Assembly: GCF_009834535.1 (NCBI RefSeq)
Contig: NC_045717.1
Coordinates: 26,908,001-26,972,000, forward strand
DNA length: 64,000 nt
Direction of reading: 5' to 3'
DNA from: Camelus ferus
Lineage: Eukaryota
Positions within the stretch are counted from its first letter, which is position 1; the number at the start of each line of letters is the position of its first letter. This document shows positions 13,939 through 55,680 of this stretch, in pieces. Both the position numbers and the translations under genes were made by a program. Below the pieces are notes generated by a model. That model saw only the letters and a program-made list of their open reading frames with translations. It made no database searches and was not told the DNA's origin.

Positions 13939-16900
13939 GGCCCTGCGGGCCGGGCCGCCCCGGGCACCAGGGGTGGGCGGCGGGGGCGGCCCCTGTGGGG
14001 AGGGGGCCCGGCCGCACTGCAGTGTGGGGGCCGCGGGGGAGCCGGGGCAGTGCAGGGTGGCGGGGGGCAGGGGCGAGGGCCGCCGGACTCAGGCTGAGGG
14101 GTGGCGGGGCATGCCAGCGGCAGGCGGGCACTGCCTCCTCACACAGGGCACCCAGGGGCAGCGGCTGGTGTGTGGCTCATTCACGTGTTTGCAGAAACCT
14201 GGGGGGACAAGAGAGACCGTCAGACCACCCCTGGGCTCCTCAGCCCCATCCTCCCCACTGAAGTCAGACCCCCAAAGCCTCTTGGAAAATCCCTTCCATC
14301 CATGTCCACCAGGGTGCAAACCCGGAGGCCTCCCCTGGAGGTGGAGGAGCATGCTCTCCCCATCCGCCCCCTCTCTGTCCACCCTCCAGTGGCCTGGGAA
14401 GTGGGGTCACCCCACTCTGGGCTCCTGAGGGTCTTGAGAGGGACCCCACGAGTCTGGGCCACACAGAAACACACAGTCGTGGAGGAATACTTGGATTATG
14501 GTTTCATAAACAGAGCAGGGGAACAGGGCGTTTCTGGCCTCTGATTGGCTACCAGGGACCAGAGTCCAGGTGCATTCTGGGTTCTGGTTCTGAGTTCTGG
14601 GTGCTGCTCGTGGCCGTGCTGGATGCAGCCCGGTCCGGGGAGTGCCAGGCACCTTCCTTTCTCACAGGCACGCTGGCTGCCCGAGACGCACTTGCTGTTT
14701 ATGGGCTCTGAGCTGCAGCCCCCACTCAGGCTCTCATCCCATCCCTAAACCTCAACTTCGCTAGACCTCAGTTTCCCCATCGGCACAGTGGTGCCCTAAA
14801 AGGCGCGCCCACCTCCCTGTGCCCAAGCAGGATGAAGCGAGTCTATGATGGCACAGACGGGGGGAGGGGCGGGCACAGCAAGCACCACACTGGTGTTGAG
14901 GAAGGAGGGACAGATGGCCCCCGGTTCACCGACGACGAGGAAAGCAGGCTGGGAGGGGACCCCCTGGAGGACACACAGCAGGTTCCGGGCAGGGCTGGGA
15001 TTCGAACCCAGGGCTGGGTGACATCAGAGCCTCCCACACAGCCCCCACGTGCTCTCTGCAGGGAGTTCCCCTGCCCTTTGGGACCCCAGGTGAGGCCGAT
15101 GTCCCAGAATGCAACGCACTCTGCCCCTAGCCTAGGGTCCCCTTGGACCCCAGCCAACCCTTGCTGCCAAGGCCTCGGGTGGGCTCTGGGCATGGACATC
15201 CCAGAGCCTGGCACAGCGGGGCACAACAAAGGACAGGAGGATGACGCAGGTCCTGTCCCGGCCCCCCACCCAAGCCCAGGCCACACCTCCAGCCGCCCAG
15301 GCCGCCAATAAAACAGACCAGGCAGAACCCAACAGGTCTGGCAGTGACACCCCAGATGGTACATCACTGGGACAGTGGGGGCAGCAGGGGAGTCCAGAAG
15401 CCACCCCTAACCCAGCAAATGAATCCCCTAAGGATCTTGAACAGCTCCTGGAGCACAGGGGGCCCACACACAGGAAGGGGCTGACACAGTGGGTGCTGGC
15501 TGCTAGAGGCTCCTGGTAGCTGGCTGACACTGACCAGCCTGGCCACCCTCCCAACCCCTCCCCTGACCTGCTAAGAGAAAGAAGCCTGACCCCACCCTGG
15601 GGAGACCCTTCCAGCCTTCCCAGTCACAGGAGGGGCCCTTTCCCCAGTCCTTGGGGCTTCCAGCAGGATGGGTGAAAGGACGGTGGGGGATGCAGGTGAG
15701 CGGCCCCTGTGGGAAAGTGGGCAGGGACCTGTCCTGGGAGGGCCTCAGGATCCAACAGGGGCAGGGGTCCCAGGGCACAAAGGCCCTCTCCGAGGCCACA
15801 GCGCTGGAGAGTGACCAGGCTAGCCTGTCCTTAGAAGCAGCAGAATAGCACCCAGCCCCCACCCCCCAGGGGCAGGCGGTCACCCCCAGCACCAGCCCCA
15901 GCCCCAAGAAGTGCTGAGGGGACATTTCTCACCCAGTGTCTAGTCTGGTCTGCCGCCCCTCCCCCACCTTTGACAACTTCAAGATGAGTCCCCCCTCCCC
16001 ACGGAAACGCTCTGGGCAACGCCCCCCTCTTTGGGGGGCAGAAGGAAGAGGCCAGAGGAAGCCACTCCCCCCACGCCATCCCCCTCCCCAGGCCTGCTGG
16101 GTTTAATGACCCTTCCGGGTCCACGGTGGGGGAGGGGAGCAGGGCAGGCCTCCACGCTGGGGCTGGTGGAGGGGGCAGGTGGGAACCCTAGAGCCCCCTG
16201 GGCCCGGGCAGGACCCCCCATGGCCGCCATTAACCCTAAGCGGGTGACGCCCGCCCCCCTCCAGACCCCTCCCCCCAGGAGCCCTTTGTCCTCGGCCCTA
16301 CCCCCACTTTATGACAACCCCAGGGGAGAGGCAACCCCTGGCAGGGACTAGGGGGGATGGGGGTGCTGGGTGGTCGTTGGGACCTGGCTGGAGGGGCGGG
16401 GAGGAATCTGGGGCCACACCCTCCCCCCCAATGCCTCCCGGGGAGAGAGAGGTCACCCGCTCAGCCCAGGGCTTGCAAAACACGGTTATTTAAAGAGTTG
16501 TGCAAGGCTGGGGCCCGCGGGTGGCGAAAGGGGGCCCTCACTCCACCAAAGGAAGAGAAGGGGGAGGGCGGGGCAGAAACCTGGGGAGGGGGCTAGCAGA
16601 GTCCAGCGGGGGCGGTCTGGAGGAAGTGAGAAAAGAAACACTTAAGAAGAGAAGAAATAAGAAGACAGAAACCCCAGTCCGATTTCAAAGGCTTCTTGGA
16701 AAGCGGCAGATTTGCATGGTGGGGGGGCAAACCCTCCAGGCCGGGCCACTAAAAACGGAAGATTATTGACAAACCGGCCGCCCAGGTCCGCCGAACGTTG
16801 GAATTGACCAACGCGCGCTCCCCGCGCTTCCTGCGCCCGCTTTTGTGTCTGGGGGGCACTGAACGGGACAGGGGGGCCTTTTCCCGAGGATCCTCACCAG

Positions 16901-27549: not shown

Positions 27550-27912
27550 TTAATTTTTTAAAAATTGAAGGATAGTTGATTTACAATGTTGTGTTAGTTT
27601 CAGGTGTACAGCAAAGTGATTCAGTTATACATACATATATTCTTTTCTATTATAGGTTATTAAAGGACACTGAATGTAGGGGGGGAGGGTATAGCTCAAG
27701 TGGTAGAGCACATGCATGCGTGAGATCCTGGGTTCAATCCCCGGTACCTCCACTGAAAAACCAAATAAATAACTAAACCTAATGACCCCCCTGCAAAAAA
27801 AGGTACTGAACATAGTCCCCTGTGAGGCACAGGAGGTCCTTGTTGTTTATCTACTTCATAAAAAAGTAGCGTGTACCTGTTCATCTCAAACTCCTAATTT
27901 ATCCCTCCCCTC
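27550..27912 (-). mobile_element. LINE-1 3' end (L1MA/laurasiatherian type)
   Basis: TTGAAGGATAGTTGATTTACAATGTTGTGTTAGTTTCAGGTGTACAGCAAAGTGATTCAG. Confidence 0.8.
27679..27802 (+). mobile_element. vic-1-type SINE nested in an L1 3' end
   Basis: A/B boxes; imperfect flanking duplication AAAGGACACTGAATGTA / AAAGGTACTGAACATA. Confidence 0.88.
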
Positions 27913-29818: not shown

Positions 29819-37740
<7,922 letters not shown>

Positions 37741-38560: not shown

Positions 38561-38566
38561 AATAAA
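38561..38566 (+). terminator. R3HDM4 poly(A) signal AATAAA
   Basis: Canonical hexamer about 820 nt after the stop, followed by a T-rich tract. Confidence 0.8.
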
Positions 38567-39050: not shown

Positions 39051-39325
39051 CCTGCAGGACTCCGCAGCCTGGGTCATCTGCTGTTTCTCTCGTGATGGCA
39101 CCGAGGGAACTGCCCTCCCCCGGCCACAGCAGGGGTCTCTGCTGTCCACAGGGCTCTTCACAAGGCTGACCTTGTCCCTGAAGGTTGAAAATTCTGCAGG
39201 AGAGATTTACCTCTATACCTGCTCCGAGTGACCGAGAACCAGCCAAGGAGCCTGCTTCCTTTCACCCGGGCACCGTTTAGAAACCAAGATCTATCTGGGT
39301 GCTGTTCCATTTTAACAGACATTGT

Positions 39326-39457
39326 GTTATTTTTGGCGGGGGGCGGGGTAGTGGAATTTAGATTTATCCATCTTTAGTTTAACGGAGGAGCTGGGGATTG
39401 AACCCCGGACCTAACATGAGAAGCCGCGCTCCCCCGCTGTGCTGCATCCTCCCCTCC
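39326..39457 (-). mobile_element. vic-1-type SINE, diverged
   Basis: Reverse B-box GGATTGAACC; perfect 14-bp TSD TTAACAGACATTGT at 39312..39325 and 39458..39471. Confidence 0.85.
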
Positions 39458-39708
39458 TTAACAGACATTGTAGTTTTCAACACAGATGCCGAATGAGGGA
39501 AATCCAAATGCCCCAGCTTGGAGGCTCCCACGGGTAACGAGGACCCAACTTCTGGTGCCCGGAGCGCCCACAGGCTGCCTGTGCTCCCCTACGCGGACCC
39601 GCAGCCGGGCTCCCAGGCCATCGGGGTTTGCAGACGGGACGGGGTGGCATCCACACGGGCCCTGGATTGGTTCTCGCTTACCAAGCCCAGTTTCTCCATC
39701 CACGGATG

Positions 39709-39844
39709 NNNNNNNNNNNNNNNNNNNNNNNNNNNNNNNNNNNNNNNNNNNNNNNNNNNNNNNNNNNNNNNNNNNNNNNNNNNNNNNNNNNNNNNNNNNN
39801 NNNNNNNNNNNNNNNNNNNNNNNNNNNNNNNNNNNNNNNNNNNN
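39709..39844. other. N gap (136 nt)
   Basis: Read directly. Confidence 1.
39723..39829 (-). ncRNA. RNU6: Inferred U6 snRNA gene (RNU6-9 orthologue) lying inside the N gap; the RNA sequence itself is not visible
   Basis: TATA (TAAATA, 39859..39854), PSE-like TCGCCCTTTGTGAAAAG (39895..39879) and octamer (40057..40064) sit at about -30, -66..-50 and -230 from an inferred +1 near 39829. A 107-nt U6 fits the 136-N gap. As I recall, human RNU6-9 lies head-to-head with MED16. Coordinates are inferred. Confidence 0.7.
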
Positions 39845-39853
39845 TCCGAGGGC

Positions 39854-40120
39854 TATTTAGAGCGCACAAAATGGACTGCTTTTCACAAAGGGCGACCTCG
39901 GTTAAAAAAAAAAAAAAAAAGTTCAACAACTTACCTCTTACTTTATGACATTAGTGCAATAATAGCTTAACCAAGTGCGGGTCATTCACTGAAATTGAGA
40001 AAGTCTTTGTTTTTCACCAAGTATACCTCAGATGTCTGCTGGAACGCCATCAATGTATGCAAATTACCCCGGAAGCGGGGCGGGACCGGAGCCGCTGCCA
40101 TCCCAGAAGTCTCCGGGAAG
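39854..40120 (-). promoter_or_regulatory. Pol III type-3 promoter (TATA + PSE + DSE), overlapping the MED16 promoter
   Basis: TATA, PSE and octamer at canonical spacing; SPH/ZNF143-like TCCCAGAAGTC at 40101..40111; ETS CCGGAAG at 40069..40075. Confidence 0.75.
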
Positions 40121-40233
40121 CGGCCGCGCTGCGCGGGCGACTCGTTGGTGCGGGGAAGATGGCGGCGCCCGAGCCGGAGCGTTAGGGCGCGTGCAGGCCC
40201 CCGCCCGCTCGTCTGGGCGCACCGGCCAGTTCG
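40100..40233 (+). other. MED16: Probable MED16 non-coding exon 1 (boundaries uncertain)
   Basis: CpG island with ETS sites and YY1 motif AAGATGGCGGC (40156..40166); plausible donor CG|GTGGG at 40234, alternative at 40276. Confidence 0.45.
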
Positions 40234-41733
40234 GTGGGCGCTGGGCTGGGGCTCGGGCGGCCTGCCGGCCTCCGGACGGCACCTGGTGCCACGGGGAGCG
40301 CGCAGCGGGAAAGGCGGCGACTCGCGGGCCCGGGGCGGGGCCTGTGGGGTCAGAGGGCGGGCCTGGAGAGCAAGGGGAGCTGGGTACGCGGCCTGAGCGC
40401 TCTGGGTGGGGTCTGTGGGGGTGGGTCGAGGAGGAACCTCGGGGTGAAGCCTGAGGCGCCCCGAGGGTCCGGGGGACCTGGAGCAGGGGGAGTCGGGGCG
40501 GGGCCTGGAACGCGAACGGGGGCGGGGCCTGACGTACCTCCCTGGGGAGGGGCCTGGGCGTTGTGCTGGGGTTGGGGCTTGAGAACTACGGGGGGGGGGC
40601 TTGGGGACCGGAACTGGGGGCCAGGAACTAGGTATTAGGTGAGGGGTCCCTGGGATGGAGCCTGGGGGGTCTCACAGGGCGAATTGGAGGCAGCGCCTGG
40701 AGGACCAGCCGTATGGGGGCAGGGCCTTGGGATTGTTGGGGAGATCCTGAGGTGGAAACGGGAGTTTAGGCTGGGACCGGGGACACAGGGGGCAAACTGG
40801 GAGTGGAGTCTGGAAAGCAGATATAGTAGGGGTAGGGGCCCGGGAGGCTTAGGGGCAGAGCTTAAAGACTGTGGAAGGGACCTTGTGGTCGGGTCTTGAA
40901 GAAGCGTGGCACCCGGGGTCGGTGATTGAGAAAAATGGGTTGATGGTACTTTTCGGCCTCCCTGAGCTTTGGTAACGGTGAAAGGGAATAGCCTTAATCG
41001 ATGCCGGGCACATAGCGCCGAGGAAAGGCCAGTGTTTCCGCTATCACTGTTACCTTTGGAAGTCCCGCACCAAGCTTCTGCCTGCCCCCGCCCTGCCTCC
41101 CTGCCGCCCTGCCTCTGCCAAAGGCAGCCCCACTGGTGCTCTTGGGTATCCGTGGGCTCCTCTTTAAGGACGGACCTTGGGTTGTGCCTCTTCTCACCGC
41201 TTCCTCTGCCCCATCGTTGTTCACCTAGACCACTTGTCTCCCAGCCTCGCCCTCCAGACAGCCAGAGGGGTCTGCTGAAACAGAAACAGGTCTCAGCCCT
41301 TCTGGGTGAACCCCCCAGGCCCTGCACGATCTGCCTCCTCCTCCCCTCCCCACCCTCACTTTACTCCTCTCCTACACTCACTCTGTTCAGCTACACAGCC
41401 TGACCACTCCTTCAGCACCCCAGGCTCCGTCCAGCCTCTGGGCCTTTAGCACTGGCAGTTCCCTCCGCCTGGAATGCTCTTCCTCCAGGCTGCACACCTC
41501 TATCCCTCGCACCTACACTGCGGAGGCCTCCTTGGCCATGAGTGTGTAAAATGCAGCTCCCCCGCCACACACGAGGGCAGGGATTGAGTCCACTTGTTTC
41601 CCTTTGGCGACCCAGCGCCCAGCACTGTACTCGGGGTCCTGCACACCCTGCCTGAACGTCCATGACAAGCCAGCCTTCCCTCCTTCAGGAACTGGTGGTC
41701 GCCCTCCGTGTGTGAGCTTGGCGGGTGGGCACA

Positions 41734-41866: not shown

Positions 41867-44800
41867 GTGCGCCCCTCGCCCGGCCCCCATCCCATGTCAT
41901 CAGGCCCCAGCTCCTACAGGTTTCCAGCATCTCCTCATCGGTGGCAGGGGTGATGAGGGGTGAAGGGCCGAGTGTGCTCTCCCATGCCTGGAGCCAGGGG
42001 ACCCTTGGGTCACCCCTGCAGAATGTGACGGGGTGATGGGTGGGTGGTTCCCTACAGCTTGGCCTGAGGCTCATGCCTGAGTTTTCCAGGCTTTTGAAAG
42101 CCTTTGAGGTGCACCAGGCCTGCGCTTGTTAGAGGAAATTGGAAAAACAGAGAAGTTTAGGATGAGGAAAACGAACCAGAGGTTCCCTCCCACGGAGAGA
42201 TGCCCGACATTAGTGTTTCGGGTTTTCTCGTCCTTTCAATCACAGGTGTAGGCACACAGGTGGCAGAGTCTTGGGCCTGCTCAGGGAGGAGACCCAGCCT
42301 GTTCCTGGAAAGCCCTGGGCCGTGGGCGTGTCAGCAGCAGCTCCGCACTCACTGGAGCTGGGGCTTTGCTGGGCTTCTCCCTCGTCACCCCTGGGGTCAC
42401 TGCCGGCTGTGCTGTGGTTGCCCTGTTGACCACCCAATCCCTCGCAGACCTGACCCGCATGATCCACATCCTGGACACGGAGCACCCCTGGGACGTGCAC
42501 TCCATCAACTCTGAGCACAGTGAAGCCATCACCTGCCTCGAGTGGGACCAGTCAGGTGAGGGTGGGGCTGGGGGTCCAGGCGGGGCCGAGGGAGGGGGCA
42601 GTGCTCATCCCTGATCTCCAATCCCTGGGCTGTCTGCTCTGTTTCCTGGTCAGTCCCCAGGGTCCAGAGCTGGGACTCAAACCATTGACCTGTGTCTTTG
42701 CGGCCCCCGCACTTCCCACTCCCCATGTCCAGAGTCCTTTCCAGAATATACCTGTGCCACTCCCCTGCTCCACCTCCCCAGAGCCTTGATGTGCCTAGCG
42801 GTGGGCTTTGTGACGCAGGCTCACGGCTCCTGTCGGCCGATGCTGACGGGCAGATCAAGTGCTGGAGCATGGCAGACCACCTGGCCAACAGCTGGGAGAG
42901 CCACGTGGGCAGCCTGGTGGAGGGGGACCCCATCGTGGCCTTGTCCTGGCTGCACAACGGTGTGAAGCTGGCCCTGCACGTGGAAAAGGTGGGTGTCCCC
43001 CCTGCGTGAGTGGGGGTGGTGGACGGGGGCCCTCACCCTTCCTGCCTACCTGCCAGCCTCCGGGCTGGCTCCTCCCCGCATTGCCAGCACCTTGGTCTCT
43101 CCAGCCGGGGCCCAGTCACGGTGGCCACCAGGCCGTGAACACCTGTTTCCAGCTGGCCATCCATTTAACTAGTGGCTGCTGTTCTCGGAATCCAGCCCAC
43201 CCTTTGATTTAGTAATATCCCAGAATTCTTCCCTGGACCCCGATTCAGCCCAGTGTCTCTACTGAGAGTGGGTGCCACCCAGGTCAGGGACCCTGCGTCC
43301 ATGTCCTAACCTCACACCTCCACACGTCACTTTCCTGGGGGTCACGTGGTGCTGATGGTCGTCACTGTCAGGGTTCACTGTGAAGCCGCCGTCTGGCACA
43401 GGGTGAGGGCCCAGGGCCGCCACAGGTGTTCAGACGGCTCCTCAGCTGAGCGGCCTCCAGAACCAGGAGGCCCTCCTGGATTGATGCCATGGAAAGTGAC
43501 TTTTTCTCCTGTCCCTTCCCCACATCTGCCTGCCCTGAGCTCAGCTAGGCCTGGGGGCTCTTACTGTCCATGCATGGGAGCAGAGCCTGGGCGCCAGCCG
43601 CCTGCCCCAGGATAGGCCCCTGCAGCCCTCCTTTTGTGTGTTTTCTTTTTCTTCCTTTGTTTCTTTCTTTCTTTCTTTCTTTTTTTTTTTTAACAAATTT
43701 TGTTGAGATATGGTTCACATACCGAGTAACTCACTTACCTAAAGTACACAATTCAGTGGGTTTTCAGTATCTTCACAGACTAGTGCAACCGTCACCACAG
43801 GCAGTTTCAGACCATTTTCATCACCTCGAAGAAAGCTGTGTCCCCATTAGCCTCACCCCCCACCCGCTCCAGCCCCTGACCACCGGGAACCCATTCTCTG
43901 TACCCGTGGACTGGCCTGTTCTGGACGTTTCACGTCCATGGAGTCGCACACTGTGTCCTTCTGTGCCTGCTTCTCTCTCTGACCGTCGTGTTCTGAGGGT
44001 CTGTCCATGTGGGAGCAGGGTGTCAGTGCTTGACTTCCTTGTTACCAAATACATTTGTCTTTAAATTATAAAAGACGTATGTGCTGGTTTAAAACGCTCA
44101 GACATGGGACTTTTGAAGCCTGTGGCATTGAGGTCAGGCATTTGGCTCCCGTCTCCCAGGTAGGCACTCTCACCGCTTGTCTGGCTGCCTGGCCTTCTGG
44201 ATCCTTCCCCCGTGGGAAGTGTCTTTTTCAAACGTCTGCTCTGCAGTGAAGTCGTGCACTACATGCGCTCCTTCATTGTAGTAGGGACCTTTCTCTGCAT
44301 CACCACCCATGAGCTCCCGCCTTTTTGTGTCTTTTATCAACTCAAGTGACAGATCTGATGGTCCTTGAGCAGAATTCTGGCCGCTGAGAAGAAGCCTTTT
44401 AAAGCCCCAGCAGCTCAGGCCCCGCCCACCCTCTCCGGGTTCTAGAGAAATCCCACTGCGGGCATCTTGGGGTTGCTGCCCATGTCTCTCCCTGGGGGTC
44501 ATTCAGGGCCTTGGCTTCTTTCTCTCTGACGGGGGGTCAGAGAGGCCCACATCACAGGACGCTCGTGTGGTCAAGTGGCTGAGGCCAAACCTGGACTCAG
44601 GTTCATGGTCTCCTGGCTTCTGCCACATGGTTCTTCTGTGTTCCCAAGAGTGCGGCTTCCAGAAGAGGGTCCTCGGTCTCCCAAGGCCGATCCCTGAGGC
44701 TGAGCGGGTGCCTGGGGAAGGGGCCACACCAGGCTGACCCTCCCTCTGCCCGCAGTCAGGCGCCTCCAGCTTCGGGGAGAAGTTCTCCCGCGTCAAGTTC

Positions 44801-47800
44801 TCACCGTCCCTCACGCTGTTTGGGGGCAAGCCCATGGAGGGCTGGATTGCGGTGACGGTCAGCGGCCTGGTCACCGTGTCCCTGCTCAAGCCCAGCGGCC
44901 AGGTGCTGACCTCGACGGAGAGCCTGTGCCGGCTGCGTGGGCGCGCGGCCCTGGCCGACATCGCCTTCACGGGCGGCGGCAACATCGTGGTGGCCACGGC
45001 GGATGGCAGCAGCGCGTCCCCCGTACAGTTCTACAAGGTGTGCGTGAGCGTGGTCAGCGAGAAGTGCCGCATCGACACCGAGATCCTGCCCTCCCTCTTC
45101 ATGCGCTGCACCACCGACCTCAACCGCAGGGACCGCCTGCCCGCCATCACCCACCTCAAGTTCCTGGCGCGGGACATGTCGGAGCAGGTGAGCCCCCTGC
45201 TGTGGCTCAGCTCCTGGCCCCATGGCCGGACCTCCAAGGGACTAAACCAGGTGTGGGCGGGGCTGGTCCCCCAGAGGCTCCAGGGAGAAGTGGCTCCTGC
45301 CTCTTCCAGCTTCTAGAGGCGCCGCATCCCTGGCCCCCGGCCCCCCCCATCCTCACCGCCAGCAGCGCAGCATCCCCCGTCTCTCTCTGACTCTGACCCT
45401 CCCGCCTGCCTCTGATGAGGACTCTGTGAGGACACAGGGCCCCCTGGGAATCCAGGGTCACCCCCATCCCAGGGGCCTTAACTCAGTCCCACCTTCAGGG
45501 TCCCCTCTGCCCTGTGAGGTGACGTGTCCTCAGGTCCCAGGACCAGGGCAGGAACCAGGTTAGACGGGGTCTCATTGTAACCTCGTAGTGATAAGCCCCC
45601 ACCTTCAGGAAGCCCTGACGTGTTCCCCTGGTCCCCTTTGCTTTCTGCCAGGGGCACCAGCGGGTGACTGCCCTCCCCAGGCGAGGTGCTGTCGGGGGTG
45701 GGCAGGTGTGGACTTGGGGTGGGCAGACCTGGGTTTGAGTCCACAACGGCCATGAGGTTGGTGCTGGCATGGGCCCTGTGTAGGAGCCGGAGGCCCAGAG
45801 AGGCCAGGGGGCCAAGTCCAGGCCCGCTTCCCAAGCCGCTGCCAACCCCCAGGTGCTCCTGTGCGCGTCCAGCCAGACGAGCAGCGTGGTGGAGTGCTGG
45901 TCCCTGCGCAAGGAGGGGCTCCCCGTGAACAACATCTTCCAGCAGCTCTCGCCTGCCGGTGAGCCTCCCTTTCCGCCTGGCCTTGCGTCCCGCTGTCCTG
46001 GCACTGGGCGTGGTGAGGGTGTCCCAGCGCAGGGACCCTGGGCAGGCCAGTTACACAGGCCCCTGAGTCCCAGGACCCTCTGAAACCCCGATTAGAGTGA
46101 GCGTGGGGGTGAATGGAGTTGGCCGAGAACACGCCCTCCAGCTCCCCTCGCCTCCCCTCCCCACACCACTTGGAGCCCCAAGCCCCTCACCAAGGCTGTC
46201 CCCTCTCCTGACACCTGGCGAGGCGCGGAAGCCAGAAAAGCCAGCTTCCCAGAAGCTGGGGTGACCCCGTGGCCCAGGTCTCCGGCCACCTCTGCCCTGT
46301 ACACAGGGTGTTTTCCTGCAGACAGAAGCTTTGGCTCTTTGCTGATCAGCACTGATGGGCCCTGGAGTAGCTGTGGAACTGGGTCAAGAGGCCCCTCACA
46401 GCCCTGCTCACCCGCAGGGGTTACATAAGCTGCCTATTGTGGCTGGGGAGAAATTAAGTGCCCAGAGGGTCACGCTGCCTTTCCTGAGTGACCCTGCGGG
46501 CGGGTCGGGCAACATGGGGCCTCGGCCCTTCCCAGGTCTTCCTCCTTCCTCCAGGCAGCGCAGGGCCCTGTCTTCCCAACTTCTTGCCCCCCACGCCCAT
46601 GGCCGGGCTTGTCCTGCACCTTGTCTCCCACCCCTGCCATCCCCAGCCCTGGGACCTAGTCACAGGTGGGACCACATCTCAAGCAGAAGGACCTCCCCTT
46701 GCTGGGTAGAGTCTTGTCCTTACGCATGTGTCGGGATGCTGGAGGTGGTCTCTGAGCTCACACGCCCAACCCCACCCCACCCCTCAGTCCAGCCTCACAG
46801 GCCTTTTGGGCTCTCAGGCCTGCCCCTTCCAGTCTCCCCTCCCCTGTCTGGTAGCCTGTCCTCCCTGAGTGTCCACCTCAGGCCCTTCTGGAGGGTGGCC
46901 ACCCCTAGGCAGACCTCAGGCCCCCGTTCTACCAACCATGCTCCACACCATGGTCGAGTCAGTGGCCTGGCGTGGGTGGACAGGTGGGTTCAGGTCCAGC
47001 TCTGCCTCAGCCTCCAACTGACACGCTCCTCCGTGGACCTAGCAGGGCCCGAGCTGTCACGGCGGGTGTGGATCACTGTATGCTGCTGCCCGGGTTGTCA
47101 CTCTCACAGCGCTGTTTGGTGTCGCTGCATCAGGTGCTATAGTCCACGCTGGTCTCAGGCCGAGTCGCCCCTCTCTGGGCCTCAGTCTCCCTGGGGGATG
47201 ACTTTTGCCAAGAGTCCCCTTATGTGGGCTGTTCAGGGCCGAGCGCTCAGGACAGATGGGCCGAGAGGAGCTGTGTCTCAGCCAGCTTTGCCGTGTAACA
47301 CACCAGCCTCGAACTCTGGCTCAGAACCACAGTCCGGAAGGTGCTGGGCTAGGCTGCCTCTGCCGCTCAGTCCTGGTTCCAGGTCTGCCGTCAGCCCCGG
47401 GGCAGCCGGGGCAGCTAACCATCGGCTGGGCGCCTGTTCACCTAGCCCAGCCTCACCTAGGTGTGTGAGCAGTACTGAGCCTTAGCTGGCATCATGCCTA
47501 CCGGGCCCACGGGCCGAGTTCAGATTGACGGGAACCAGCCCACCTCTGGTTGAGGGGCTTCCTCATCACTCTGGGGCTGGGGGGCGCAGGGGGTCCATCT
47601 TGGCCCCTGGTCCGTCCAGCTGAGGCCTCCTGGGGAAAGTTGGGGTTCCACCCAGGACCTCTCAGACCATAGGGACAGAGAACCCAGCGCCAGCCGGCCG
47701 AGATGCGAGGGGAATTTTGGGGTTTTGTGGTGGTGAGGTCTGGGTTGGGGTCACTCCCTAGCACGTTGGCTCCTTCAAGGGAACATGGTGGTGCCGCCCC

Positions 47801-50800
47801 ACCAGGCATCATGCGCTCGGGGCCCCGGGAAGGGCAGGGCGCTGGGGCAGATCATCCTCTTTGTCTTCACTTTGTTGCTGTCTGTCCCCTCAACCCCGTC
47901 CCCACCCCTGCTTTCAGTTGGCGACAAACAGCCCATGATTCTCAAATGGCGGATCCTGTCAGCCACCAACGACCTGGACCGTGTGTCTGCCGTGGCGCTG
48001 CCCAAACTGCCCATCTCGCTCACCAACACTGACCTGAAGGTGGCCAGCGACACCCAGTTCTACCCCGGCCTCGGTACAGCTGTCTCCCGAGCTCCCTGGG
48101 GGAGGTGGGCTCCGAGCTGAGTCTCAGGGTTGTGGGAGCCTGCCTCCCAGCCTCATGTCCACGAGGATGTGGGCGCTGCTTTCGGGGTTGTGTGGGCTCG
48201 GAGGGCTGGGAGGCTGGCCAACGAGCTTTGCTCTTTAACATGGAGAGAGCTGTTGGGAATCAGTAGGGGAGAAGCTGGGAACTTGCGGCAACCTGTCCAT
48301 AGGCGGCATCATCCCCTTACCTCGCCCCCGCTCTGCAGTACTGCGATGTGGGTCCTGGGCACAGCCCCCGGGGGCACACAGCCACACCGCAGCCCCCAAC
48401 CTCACTGACCTCCGCTGCCCCCAGGCCCTTTGTGTGCTCTGGCCCTAGGCCCTTGCGTCTGCTGTGTGTCCTACCCACTTGTCCCCCTGGACATCAGTGT
48501 TGGCTCGCATCGGCCAAAGCTCAGGGCCAGCTGCGGGGGGTGGGCAGGGGGGGAGACCCCGCAACAAGCGGCTCCAGCGATTCGGGGGCTGTTAGCAAGG
48601 GAGAGGGGAGGGCGGCTGCCAAATACCCGGGTGGGGCGGGCTTAGTGGCCCAGGCTCGGCACCCCCGGCGCAGCCTCTGCCTGACGCCGCGTGTGCCCCC
48701 CAGGGCTGGCCCTGGCCTTCCACGACGGCAGCGTCCACATCGTGCACCGGCTCTCGCTGCAGACCATGGCCGTCTTCTACAGCTCTGCGGCCCCACGCTC
48801 CGTGGACGAGCCGGCCATCAAACGCCCTCGGACCACGGGCCCTGCCATCCACTTCAAGGCCATGCAGCTCTCCTGGACCTCCCTGGCCCTCGTGGGCATC
48901 GACAGCCACGGCCGGGTATGCGCTGTCCTGAAGCGTCTTAGGCCCCTGCTGCGTGGGGGCTGAGGTTGGCCGTGCCCTCTGGGGGGGGTCTGGGCGGGGT
49001 CTCTGTCACAGGGTGGGGTGTGCGGCTCACAGCCAGCGCTTCAGAAGTGGGAGCCCCGAGGACGGTTGCTCTGCAGGGTAAGGGGTCCTGGGATTAACAC
49101 CCCTAACACCACCCCAACTGTGAGGAGTAAGTGCTTGTTCCCAGAGGAACCTGCCCACGGCCTGGCCGGGACACGCAGGCAGCCCTCACACTCACACTCT
49201 TGCTTACACACACGCAGACAGGTGTTTCCACTCTCCCACGTTCACAGCCCACGTGTTCACACACGGCACGGATTCACAGACACATGCATGCGTTCGCACA
49301 CTCACACTCATGTGCATGCACCCCCATCCCCCCAGAGGCAGTGGGCTCCTGGGTCGCTGTCGGGTGTGCCCTGTGATTTCTGTTCTGGCTCTGCCCGCAT
49401 CTGCTCCGGCCTGTCCTCGGCATCTCTGGGTGGTGGGTTCGGATTCTCCGGAGCACTGGGTCTGTGTCTTCAGGGACCGCACGACCCCTGCCGGTCCTGT
49501 CACTGCACACATGCTCTGCTGGGTGGGAGGCCTCCCAAGTCCCTCCGGGGAAGTGCCACCGCCACAGAAACCAAGGACTCGTGACCTCATTTCACACCGT
49601 GTGGCCCTGCCGGTGTCTCTGCAGCCCTCGGGTCCGACAGGACAGGACTGCAGGCCTGGACCTGGGGTGGTGCAGCCTTCCTGCCTCTCGCCACCCCGCC
49701 CCTCATGGCCCACCCTCTCCTGGCAGCTGAGCATGTTACGCATCTCGCCGTCCATGGGCCACTCGCTGGACGTGGGGCTGGCCCTCCGGCACCTGCTCTT
49801 CCTGCTGGAGTACTGCATGGTGACCGGCTATGACTGGTGGGACATCCTTCTGCACGTGCAGCCTGGCATGGTGCAGAGCCTGGTGGAGAAGCTGCACGAG
49901 GAGTACACGCGCCAGAAGGCCGAGCTGCAGCAGGTGTGCGCGCCTCCCTCCTCCGGTGACCTGCAGGCCTCCCCTCCCTGCCTGGTTGCCGGGTGCTGCC
50001 TCAGCCACCAGCGCTCGGCTGCGGGCTTGACCCCACCTGACTCTGGGTGGCCCTGGAGGCCCTTGCCCCTAAGGTAAGAGCGTAGACCATAGCTCTAAAG
50101 GTGGGAGAGGCAGAGAAGGATCCGAGGCCCGCTAGTGCACCTGTAACTCGCGGAGCCTCCCAGCTGAGGATGGCAGCTGTGCCGCTCAGCGCTTTTCAGA
50201 ACCCGAAGTGGTCCTGTGTGCCAGCAGTGACCAACCAGGAGAGAGACGGGAGAGAAAGGCCCCGCCCCCAGTGCCAGCCTGACAGGTTACGTGGACTGCT
50301 GTGAGGCCCCGGGCAGTGGCGTGGGACGGGGCTGGGCTGGGCTCGGAGCCCATAATGCCAGAAGGCTAAAATCCCTGGCTTATCGGGCTGAACTGCTTGC
50401 GAGCATTTTATATTTTAAGTCCATCAGTTACCCCTGAGACGTCAGGGCTGGGTCATCCTCTGGGGGCCGTCCCCGAACAGTGGGGCATCCCTGGCCCCAC
50501 CCACTTCATGCCGGGAGCCCCAGTTGTGGCCCTGTGGCCCTGGGGCAGGCCTGGTCCTAGATTGAGACCCTGCTGTCCTGTGAGGAAGGTCTCTTTATCT
50601 GCCCACTCACGCCCCCCACCCCCCAGGTCCTCTCCACCCGGATCCTGGCCATGAAGGCCTCGCTCTGCAAGCTGTCGCCCTGCACAGTGACCCGTGTATG
50701 CGATTACCATGCGAAGCTCTTCCTCATTGCCATCAGCTCCACACTCAAGTCGCTGCTGCGTCCACACGTCCTCAACACACCGGATAAGAGCCCGGGAGAC

Positions 50801-53800
50801 CGGTTGACCGAGATCTGCGCCAAGATCACGGACGTTGGTGGGTCCTGCCCGCCCCGCCCTCATGGGCTGCCGTGGTGATGGAGTGCTGTAGCGTCCATGC
50901 CACAGTGGAGGACCCTCCCAAACCACTGAGGAGGGCCCCTTGGGCATCTCATGCGTGCCAGGGGCGGGGACTCTCGCGGCAGGCAGCAACAGGGGAACAG
51001 ATGACCCAGCCTAGGGGTTGGTGTCCACAGAGGTGCTGCCCATGCAGAGGGAGGCCTGGGGGCCGGCGGGAGCTGCAGGGTGCCCGGTACAGGGAGTCCG
51101 AGGGGCGGGCAGGGAGTTCCGAAGGCCAGCAGTGGACACTTGGAGCTCCTCCAGCCAGCCCTTCCCTCCAGGGTCCTGGACTCAGCCTTGCTGACCCCTC
51201 ATTTGCTTGTTCACAACGTCGGGGTCGGCTTTCCGGGGCTCAGCTCATAGTGGGTGCTCATGATGAACATGTGAGGTCCTGACTTTCTGTCCCCGGCTAG
51301 ACATTGACAAGGTCATGATCAACCTCAAGACGGAAGAGTTTGTCCTGGACATGAACACACTGCAGGCACTGCAGCAGCTCCTGCAGTGGGTGGGCGACTT
51401 CGTGCTCTACCTGCTGGCTAGTCTGCCCAATCAGGTGTGCCTGCTGCGGCTCGGACGCCCCACCTCCCGGGCCCCGCCCCCCGAAGCCCCACCCGCCGCT
51501 CCCGCCCCTCCCGAAGCCCCACCTCCTCCGGCCCCGCCTCCCCCGAAACACCCACCCCTCAGGACCTGAGTTCCAAGGACGCCGCGCACACTGAAGTGCA
51601 CAACCAGGGCACCTCTCCCCGTAGGGCTCCCCACTGCGGCCAGGCCACAGCTTCCTGCGGGACGGCACCTCGCTGGGCATGCTGCGTGAGCTGATGGTCG
51701 TCATCCGCATCTGGGGCCTGCTGAAGCCCAGCTGCCTGCCTGTGTACACGGCCACCTCAGACACCCAGGACAGCATGTCCCTGCTCTTCCGCCTGCTCAC
51801 CAAGCTCTGGATCTGCTGTAAGACACACGGCCTTCTGCTCTCATTCCTCCATCGAAATACAAGCCCTGACTGAGTCCCTCCACCAGAATATAAGCTCCCA
51901 CAGGTCAAATTGTTGTCTTGGCCTCCACTGTTTCCCCAGCACAGGTCCAGGCACAGTGTGAGTGCTCATGAAACTCAGCCATTCTTAACGCACACGTGTC
52001 TTGGGTCACCAGGTGTGTGTTTCTGGAGCCAGACTCTGTTGCTGTCGCATCTCTGATGCCAGAAAGGGCACCCAGTGCTCACTGCGTATTTTTTTGTCTT
52101 TTTTCAGTTTCGTTTTGTTTTGTTTTGGGGGGAGGTAATTAGGTTTTATGTAATTACTTATTTATTCTGATGGAGGTGCCAGGGGTTGAACCCAGGACCT
52201 CGTGCATGCTAAGCAGGCGCTCTACCACTGAGCTATAGCCTCCCCTACTTCGCTGCGTATTTTTTAAATGAGTAAGTGGGTCCCCATTTTACAGAGGAGA
52301 AGGCTGAGGCCAAAGGGGGAAGGAGCCTTCCAGGGCCACCCAGGAAATCAGGGAAGGGCTGGGGCCTGCACTTGGTGTTTTGTGAGCTGAGGAGGCCAGG
52401 GTGCCTCCTGGGTGGGCAGTGCTCCCGGCAGGGCTGTGGAGAGTGACACGCCCGTGGTCCCCTCCCTGCAGGCCGTGACGAGGGCCCAACGAGCGAGCCG
52501 GACGAGGCGCTCGTTGATGAGTGCTGCCTGCTGCCCAGCCAGCTGCTCATCCCCACCCTGGACTGGCTGCCAGTCAGCGACGGCCTGGTCAGCCGCCTGC
52601 AGCCCAAGCAGCCCCTGCGTCTGCACTTCGGCAAGACTCCTGCTCTGCCTGGCAGCGCGACCACCTTGCAGCTGGACGGCCTCATCAGGTGCGTACCCGT
52701 TTCTGCCTCTGGCCCTTGGCACGGCCCTTCCTTCTGGCAGAGTCTTCCCAAAACCAGCCTGATCTCCTTCACACCTCTGTCTCAGGGCCTTTGCACGTGC
52801 TGTGCTGTCTGCATCCTTCCAGCCTGACCTAAATGCTGTTCCGGAGAATTCCGCTACCTCCGAGTCCCTCTTCCCTGCCTGTCACTTCCCTCATCCAGTT
52901 ACCTCAGCCTACACTGACTTACGCCCTCGTCTCTCTGGGTGTTGTCATCCTTCCTCTGGTCTGTCCCCACATATACGCAGGAGCCATGTGGCTGACCTTG
53001 GCTGCTCAGGCTCCAACCCCTCCAGAGTTCAAGCTGATACCCCAAGCCCTCCACCAGAAATTACACTGCAGCACAGACTGCCTGGCAGGGCCCAAGGCCC
53101 CGGGGAGGCAGAACAGTCCCTAGGCAGGACCTTCCCAGGTTTTAGAGGAACCTTTCTTTGGAATGTGTGGGTCCTGGACAGGCCATGCCACGCCTGCCAA
53201 GTTAACCCTTTACTGCCCAGCCATGCTGTGGGGTGGGTGTTTGTCCCCTTTTTATAGGCAAGTAAACTGAACCTGAGGGCTGCAGTCAGGAAGCCGGCCA
53301 CGATCCCAGGACCCTGCAGACTGCCTCCTGTTTCCAATGCTCAAGCGATGAATTCCCCAGGCAGTGTCACTAGGGGCGGGGCCTTAGCACCTTGCAGCCC
53401 CTGCTCCTGGAAGCCGCTCTGGGCCTTGTTCCACGAGACCTCCACATTTTCTTTCTTGTCTCGTGGTGGGAGGAATGGCCTGAGGAATCACACGCTGTGG
53501 TTTGCGTCTGGGCTTTAGGAAAACCTTACAAGAAGAGGTGGCTGGTCACTCAAGGGGTTTCACACTCTTTCAGAGGTTTTCAAACGTTCCGCACCGGTAA
53601 AACAAGCGGGCCCGCCCCAGCCCCGCGTTCCCTCTGACGGGTCTCGGCCCAGGTTCTCAGCTGTTGTGGGGGTGCGGGCCCTCCAGTGGGGGCGTCTGTG
53701 TGTGGGAGCCCCACTGGTGGACGTCCCCCACTCCTTCCCCAAGTGTGCACGTCACGCCCGCTTTGCTTCTAGGCTGCGGATCTGCACTGGCGGGCGGGTG

Positions 53801-54610: not shown

Positions 54611-55680
54611 CCTTTTTATTTTCATTTTATTGAAGTGTAGTTGATTTACAGCGTTGTCTCTGGTGCACAGCAAAGTGAGTCAGCTCTGCGTATACTTTTC
54701 CAGGTTCTCTTTTGTTATAGTTTATTACAAGTTAATGAGTCTAGTTCCCTGTGCTGTACAGTGGGTCCTTGTTTATCTATTTTATATGCAGTCGTTTGTA
54801 TCTGCTAACCCCAGACTCCTAATTTGCCTCTCCCCACTCTTTTCCCCTTTGGTAACCCTAAGTTTGCCTTCTCTGTCTGTGAGTCCGTTTCTCTGTTTTG
54901 TCAATAAGTTTATTTGTGTCGTATTTCAGATTCTGTATGTGAGTGATACCCTGTGATTCTTGTCTTTCTCCGTGTGACTTCANNNNNNNNNNNNNNNNNN
55001 NNNNNNNNNNNNNNNNNNNNNNNNNNNNNNNNNNNNNNNNNNNNNNNNNNNNNNNNNNNNNNNNNNNNNNNNNNNNNNNNNNNNNNNNNNNNNNNNNNNN
55101 NNNNNNNNNNNNNNNNNNNNNNNNNNNNNNNNNNNNNNNNNNNNNNNNNNNNNGCTGTGGACCTCGGGGTGCAGGTGTCGTTTCGCGTTAGAGTGCTCTC
55201 CAGTTGTACACCCAGGAGTGGGACTGCTGGGCCACATGGTGCGTCTGCTTTTAGTTTTCTAAGGAATCTCCATACTGTTTTCCTTAGTGGCTGCACCAAA
55301 CTGCATTCCCGCCAGCAGTGTCAGAGGGTTCCCCTTTCTCCACACCCTCTCCAGTACTTATTATTTGTGGACTTCTTGATGATGGCTTTTCTGACAGGTG
55401 TGACTTGACACCTCACCGTGGTTCTGATTTGCGTTTCTCTGATAATTAGCAATACTGAGCATCTTTTCATGTGCTTATTGGCTGGCTGGCTGGCTGTCTC
55501 TGGAGAAATGTCTGTCTAGGTTTTCTGCCCATCTTTTGATGAGATTGTTTGTTTTTTTGTTTTTCAGTTGTACGAGCTGCTTGTATATTTTGGAAATTAA
55601 TGCCTTGTCAGTGGCATCATTTGCAAATATTTTCTCCCATTTGTAGATTGTCTCTTTATGGTTTATGGTTTCCTTTGCAA
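54611..55680 (-). mobile_element. LINE-1 3' fragment (L1MA/laurasiatherian type) about 60 nt downstream of the MED16 stop; contains the second N gap
   Basis: TTTTATTGAAGTGTAGTTGATTTACAG; GGAATCTCCATACTGTTTTCCTTAGTGGCTGCACCAAACTGCATTCCC; TTGCAAATATTTTCTCCCATT. Confidence 0.85.
54983..55153. other. N gap (171 nt) inside L1
   Basis: Read directly; L1 sequence on both sides. Confidence 1.

Follow-up and report, generated by a model that had tools for sequence, protein, structure and literature searches.

Between the 3' end of an R3HDM4-like gene and the divergent 5' end of MED16, the 64 kb window (the whole stretch of Camelus ferus DNA analysed here) carries a run of 136 N letters, and on the minus strand an octamer, a PSE and a TATA box are directed into that run (Table 1). 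The R3HDM4-like gene is marked by an R3H-assoc domain match at 34256-34768 (+), which at 24.3 bits falls just below the cut-off of 25, and an AATAAA at 38561 fits as its 3' end. MED16 is identified by Pfam matches to Med16_N at 44834-45316 (+) (E 5.6e-23) and Med16_bridge at 49253-50077 (+) (E 1e-16), and by an exon at ~42815-42990 (+) whose translation is clearly part of the MED16 WD repeats. A CpG island at 40001-40500 (GC 0.72, CpG observed/expected 0.89), which has GC boxes and, at 40156, a YY1-type AAGATGGCGGC, is likely the MED16 promoter; it stands ~300 bp from the predicted start of Pol III, in divergent orientation. The putative MED16 first exon region also contains an upstream ORF, ATG GCG GCG CCC GAG CCG GAG CGT TAG, at 40160-40186 (+), which overlaps the YY1-type motif.

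Table 1. Features at the Pol III promoter and the adjoining MED16 5' end. Relative positions are counted from the predicted Pol III start (+1).
Feature	Window coordinates	Strand	Relative position and remarks
ETS-like CCGGAAG and GC box (GGGGCGGGAC)	40069..40085	not assigned	adjoining the octamer
Octamer ATTTGCAT, Oct-1 site of the DSE	40064..40057	-	-234..-227
T17 homopolymer	39904..39920	- (A on +)	-90..-74, immediately upstream of the PSE
PSE (SNAPc site) TCGCCCTTTGTGAAAAGC, i.e. PSE-like TCGCCCTTTGTGAAAAG(C)	39895..39878	-	-65..-48
TATA box TAAATA	39859..39854	-	-29..-24; TBP/Brf2/Bdp1 site, Pol III-specifying element
N run, 136 letters	39709..39844	-	-14..+122; predicted RNA body all N
MED16 CpG-island promoter and first exon region	40100..40600	+	divergent from the Pol III promoter; exact TSS predicted

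We find the three promoter elements exactly where the sequence-only reading had placed them, pointing into the gap. Read along the minus strand, the GC box and ETS-like CCGGAAG are followed by the octamer (ATGCAAAT on the plus strand), by ~135 nt of AT-rich sequence that ends in the T17 run, and then by the PSE, the TATA box and the N run. The octamer lies 169 nt upstream of the PSE start, the PSE and TATA box are separated by an 18-nt spacer (36 nt start to start), and only nine bases stand between TAAATA and the first N. The PSE departs from the published consensus, TCACCNTNA(G/C)NNNAA(A/T)(G/A)N (PMC5493778), at 2 of its 12 specified positions. In human U6-1, substitutions that weaken SNAPc binding fall at CC -62/-61, T -59, AA -52/-51 and G -49 of the PSE, whose first T is -65 in the structure of the SNAPc/U6-1 PSE complex (PMC9652321); all of these contact bases (CC, T, AA, G) are kept in the camel PSE. 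Pol III specificity comes from a TATA box set at a constant distance after the PSE, at about -30..-24 (PMC5493778, PMC9652321). The identity, order and spacing of elements expected of a type-3 promoter (PSE at ~-65..-48, TATA box at ~-30..-24, octamer ~220-240 nt upstream) hold at this locus, as the sequence-only reading had stated (TATA near -30, PSE at -66..-47, octamer near -220..-240).

With human RNU6-1, the camel promoter shares its architecture and the 36-nt distance between PSE and TATA starts; the U6-1 sequence is consistent with the positions -65, -62/-61, -59, -52/-51 and -49 given in PMC9652321. The two differ at non-contact positions of the PSE, and in the TATA box, which is TAAATA in the camel and TTTATATA in U6-1. 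The camel octamer, at -234..-227, lies slightly further upstream than the U6-1 octamer, at about -221..-214, and the T17 run may account for this difference of ~13 nt. The run is likely length-polymorphic and is a possible source of assembly trouble nearby. U6-1 is not known to have an active neighbouring Pol II gene (PMC2082468), unlike the camel locus beside MED16. A type-3 promoter in a compact bidirectional region shared with Pol II is familiar from RPPH1, the gene for RNase P RNA whose H1 promoter stands head to head with PARP2. H1 RNA differs from the RNA predicted here in that, at ~340 nt, its 3' part would show beyond the gap, where there is no Rfam match, and in that its neighbour is PARP2, not MED16.

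The sequence around the octamer holds further candidate sites. The GC box near it agrees with the Sp1 consensus of PMC5493778 at 9 of 10 positions, and this box and the ETS-like CCGGAAG may serve the DSE, the MED16 promoter or both. Near the octamer, a scan for Staf/ZNF143 (SPH) sites gives nothing beyond background: YYWCCCRNMATSCMYYRCR is matched best at 40099-40117, with mismatches at 5 of 19 positions, which we regard as background because the window contains 233 sites with four or fewer. Staf/ZNF143 sites are common in DSEs, yet are not listed as obligatory for all type-3 genes. The best site of this type in the window, TGTCCCAGAATGCAACGCA at 15100-15118 (+), has 2 mismatches in 19 and lies far from the Pol III promoter.

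Numbering the PSE start as -65, as in U6-1, sets +1 at 39830, one nucleotide from the 39829 that had been predicted from TATA and PSE. U6 is 107 nt long (PMC13484765), and a U6 RNA starting here would span ~39830..39724, with 14-15 N left on each side, in agreement with the earlier estimate of an end near 39723 and about 15 N per side. From the predicted +1 to the last N there are 122 nt, room enough for a 107-nt RNA provided that the number of N reflects the real length; this size argument is weaker if the run is an assembly gap, its length then being an estimate. A repeat search across the gap finds neither overlap nor mutual repeat between its flanks, and gene order over it is coherent (R3HDM4-like gene, gap, MED16). 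The window has just one other N run, of 171 letters at 54983-55153, which lies inside the likely 3' part of an L1 on the minus strand; its flanks look like the end of L1 ORF2 and the 3' UTR. Odd lengths such as 136 and 171 are also compatible with masking of highly conserved sequence, of which a U6 body, not known to vary among mammals, would be an example; we give this weak indication little weight.

The readable flanks of the 136-letter run were searched for the RNA itself and for its terminator. At gathering thresholds, Rfam models searched against the full window give no U6 in its readable part, and a permissive Rfam search (E up to 10) of 39300-40200 returns no credible RNA family. Two weak matches from that search were set aside: one is mascRNA-like (E 0.45) and corresponds to the tRNA-like portion of a SINE, the other is to DUF3800-I (E 7.3) and is driven by the T17 run. 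No run of at least four T occurs on the minus strand for 517 nt past the gap (to 39191). With a Pol III start at ~39830, transcription would thus either end within the gap or run on for a considerable distance, and the lack of both an Rfam family in the flanks and a T run over these 517 nt implies that the predicted RNA is short and lies wholly inside the gap.

These observations point to a type-3 Pol III promoter on the minus strand, which in our judgement likely serves a U6 snRNA gene, the orthologue of human RNU6-9. The likeness to RNU6-9 is judged by element composition and gene order. [quoted passage not shown] It differs in that its body is all N, no Staf/SPH site is recognised, and a T17 run occupies -90..-74. 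The sequence-only reading had noted that human RNU6-9 stands head to head with MED16; the presence of a divergent MED16 is confirmed here by Pfam and exon translation. Human 19p13.3 runs CFD-MED16-RNU6-9-R3HDM4, with RNU6-9 head to head with MED16; the camel locus has the same divergent MED16 and an R3HDM4-like gene on the other side. Active protein-coding gene start sites map close to human U6-9 and U6-2 (PMC2082468), which lends partial, independent support to this arrangement.

[quoted passage not shown] Pol III would then start at ~39830, ~25-30 nt downstream of the TATA box, transcribe toward lower coordinates and terminate at a run of T within the N letters to give an RNA of ~107 nt. Open chromatin is probably maintained by the CpG-island promoter of MED16, divergent and ~300 bp upstream. 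As all of the RNA body is N, we infer what the RNA is, where it terminates and that it is transcribed, and hence a true, transcribed U6, from the promoter and its surroundings. Against the U6 reading, the readable letters include no U6 letter, start nucleotide or terminator, and there is no convincing Staf/ZNF143 site near the octamer.

Could the motifs have come together by chance, in an AT-rich patch beside an ordinary assembly gap? With 39% GC, the visible promoter is AT-rich for a window of 62% GC, which makes TATA-like and octamer-like words likelier there. We defined the composite as a PSE carrying no more than 2 mismatches, accompanied by a TATA-like hexamer 33-39 nt beyond the start of the PSE and an octamer up to 260 nt upstream, and find it once across the two strands of the window (128 kb). 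A single one of the 21 PSE-like sites on the two strands has a TATA-like hexamer at the set distance, and an octamer as well; just one of the four octamers in the window stands upstream of a PSE-TATA pair. First-order Markov simulations of the window (n = 150) give a mean of 0.02 PSE-TATA pairs per window, and all three elements together in none of the 150. The AT-rich composition improves the local odds of AT-rich words, but falls short of the several orders of magnitude needed. The spacing is moreover that of human U6-1, and the position is syntenic to that of a known U6 gene, so that we hold a chance coincidence to be very improbable.

The remaining alternatives accept the elements and question what lies behind them. 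The promoter might be an orphan or relic, its elements perhaps kept through overlap with the MED16 bidirectional promoter and the gap holding a decayed U6 or no RNA gene. The missing Staf site and the all-N body would suit this, as would the finding that non-primate RNU6-9 promoter orthologues are weaker than primate ones in human-cell assays (PMC13355316). A PSE and a TATA box 230-300 bp from the MED16 start region have, however, no known role there, and the SNAPc contact bases, all unaltered, and the precise distance from PSE to TATA speak for selection still acting on Pol III use and against decay; we consider a relic unlikely. A working type-3 promoter could also drive some short RNA that is not U6, for instance a Y RNA, a vault-like RNA, tRNA-Sec, U6atac or one yet undescribed, since its elements are common to all type-3 genes, the body is all N and anything up to ~118 nt fits in -14..+122. 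Among specific candidates, U6atac (~125 nt plus terminator) would overrun the gap into sequence with no T run or Rfam match, and 7SK, RNase P and MRP RNAs would exceed the available length, their 3' parts reaching readable flank where there is neither match nor terminator. Synteny with the human MED16/R3HDM4 interval points instead to RNU6-9, and the other human type-3 genes are known from elsewhere in the genome. A non-U6 product appears distinctly improbable. Taken more broadly, the case of an intact promoter with another or lineage-specific short Pol III RNA behind it, or with nothing (an orphan kept for another reason), is one that we think quite unlikely.

On the preferred reading, a U6 gene orthologous to RNU6-9, the locus is very probably an ordinary one: the orthologue is expected from the known human gene, U6 promoters built of DSE, PSE and TATA are textbook material, and much is known about the five active human genes, RNU6-9 included. 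McDiarmid et al. assayed promoter orthologues of RNU6-1, -2, -7, -8 and -9, H1 and 7SK that they had taken from the Zoonomia alignment of 240 species, so that RNU6-9 promoter orthologues of about 240 mammals have been tested as gRNA promoters; dromedary U6 promoters of other loci have been tested too, and a U6 promoter from dromedary ranked with the best (PMC13355316). Two dromedary entries among the table rows listed there carry other gene identifiers, and distal 16-19-mers of the camel promoter have no matches among the supplementary table entries listed (PMC13355316). Our literature search found no paper on RNU6-9 together with MED16, and for camelid U6 promoters gave nanobody papers only. 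To call the gene hidden, as had been done, is therefore an overstatement, and its significance beyond annotation is slight; ORF-based annotation will nevertheless miss such a U6 gene, and the locus would be moderately interesting if the body were not U6. The RNU6-1 promoter is the standard shRNA/sgRNA promoter. The proposal that 39830..40120 could serve as an sgRNA promoter does not stand in that form: the last 14 nt (-14..-1) are N, and the visible promoter is for that reason not usable as a part as is.

The sole Rfam matches in the window at gathering thresholds are two to the tRNA model, at 27685-27752 (+) (40.8 bits) and 52171-52242 (-) (37.6 bits). The acceptor stems are mismatched in both and the anticodon loop is shortened in one, and these are probably the heads of tRNA-derived SINEs, not tRNA genes. 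Closer to the promoter, a tRNA-derived SINE fragment of ~132 nt with an A-rich tail, a minus-strand element, lies within 39312-39471, in the same orientation as the predicted Pol III transcript and ~360-500 nt beyond its start. The tRNA-like part of this fragment accounts for the weak mascRNA-like match mentioned above. On both sides the fragment is bounded by TTAACAGACATTGT (39312-39325 and 39458-39471, +), a 14-bp direct repeat without mismatches that looks like a target-site duplication.
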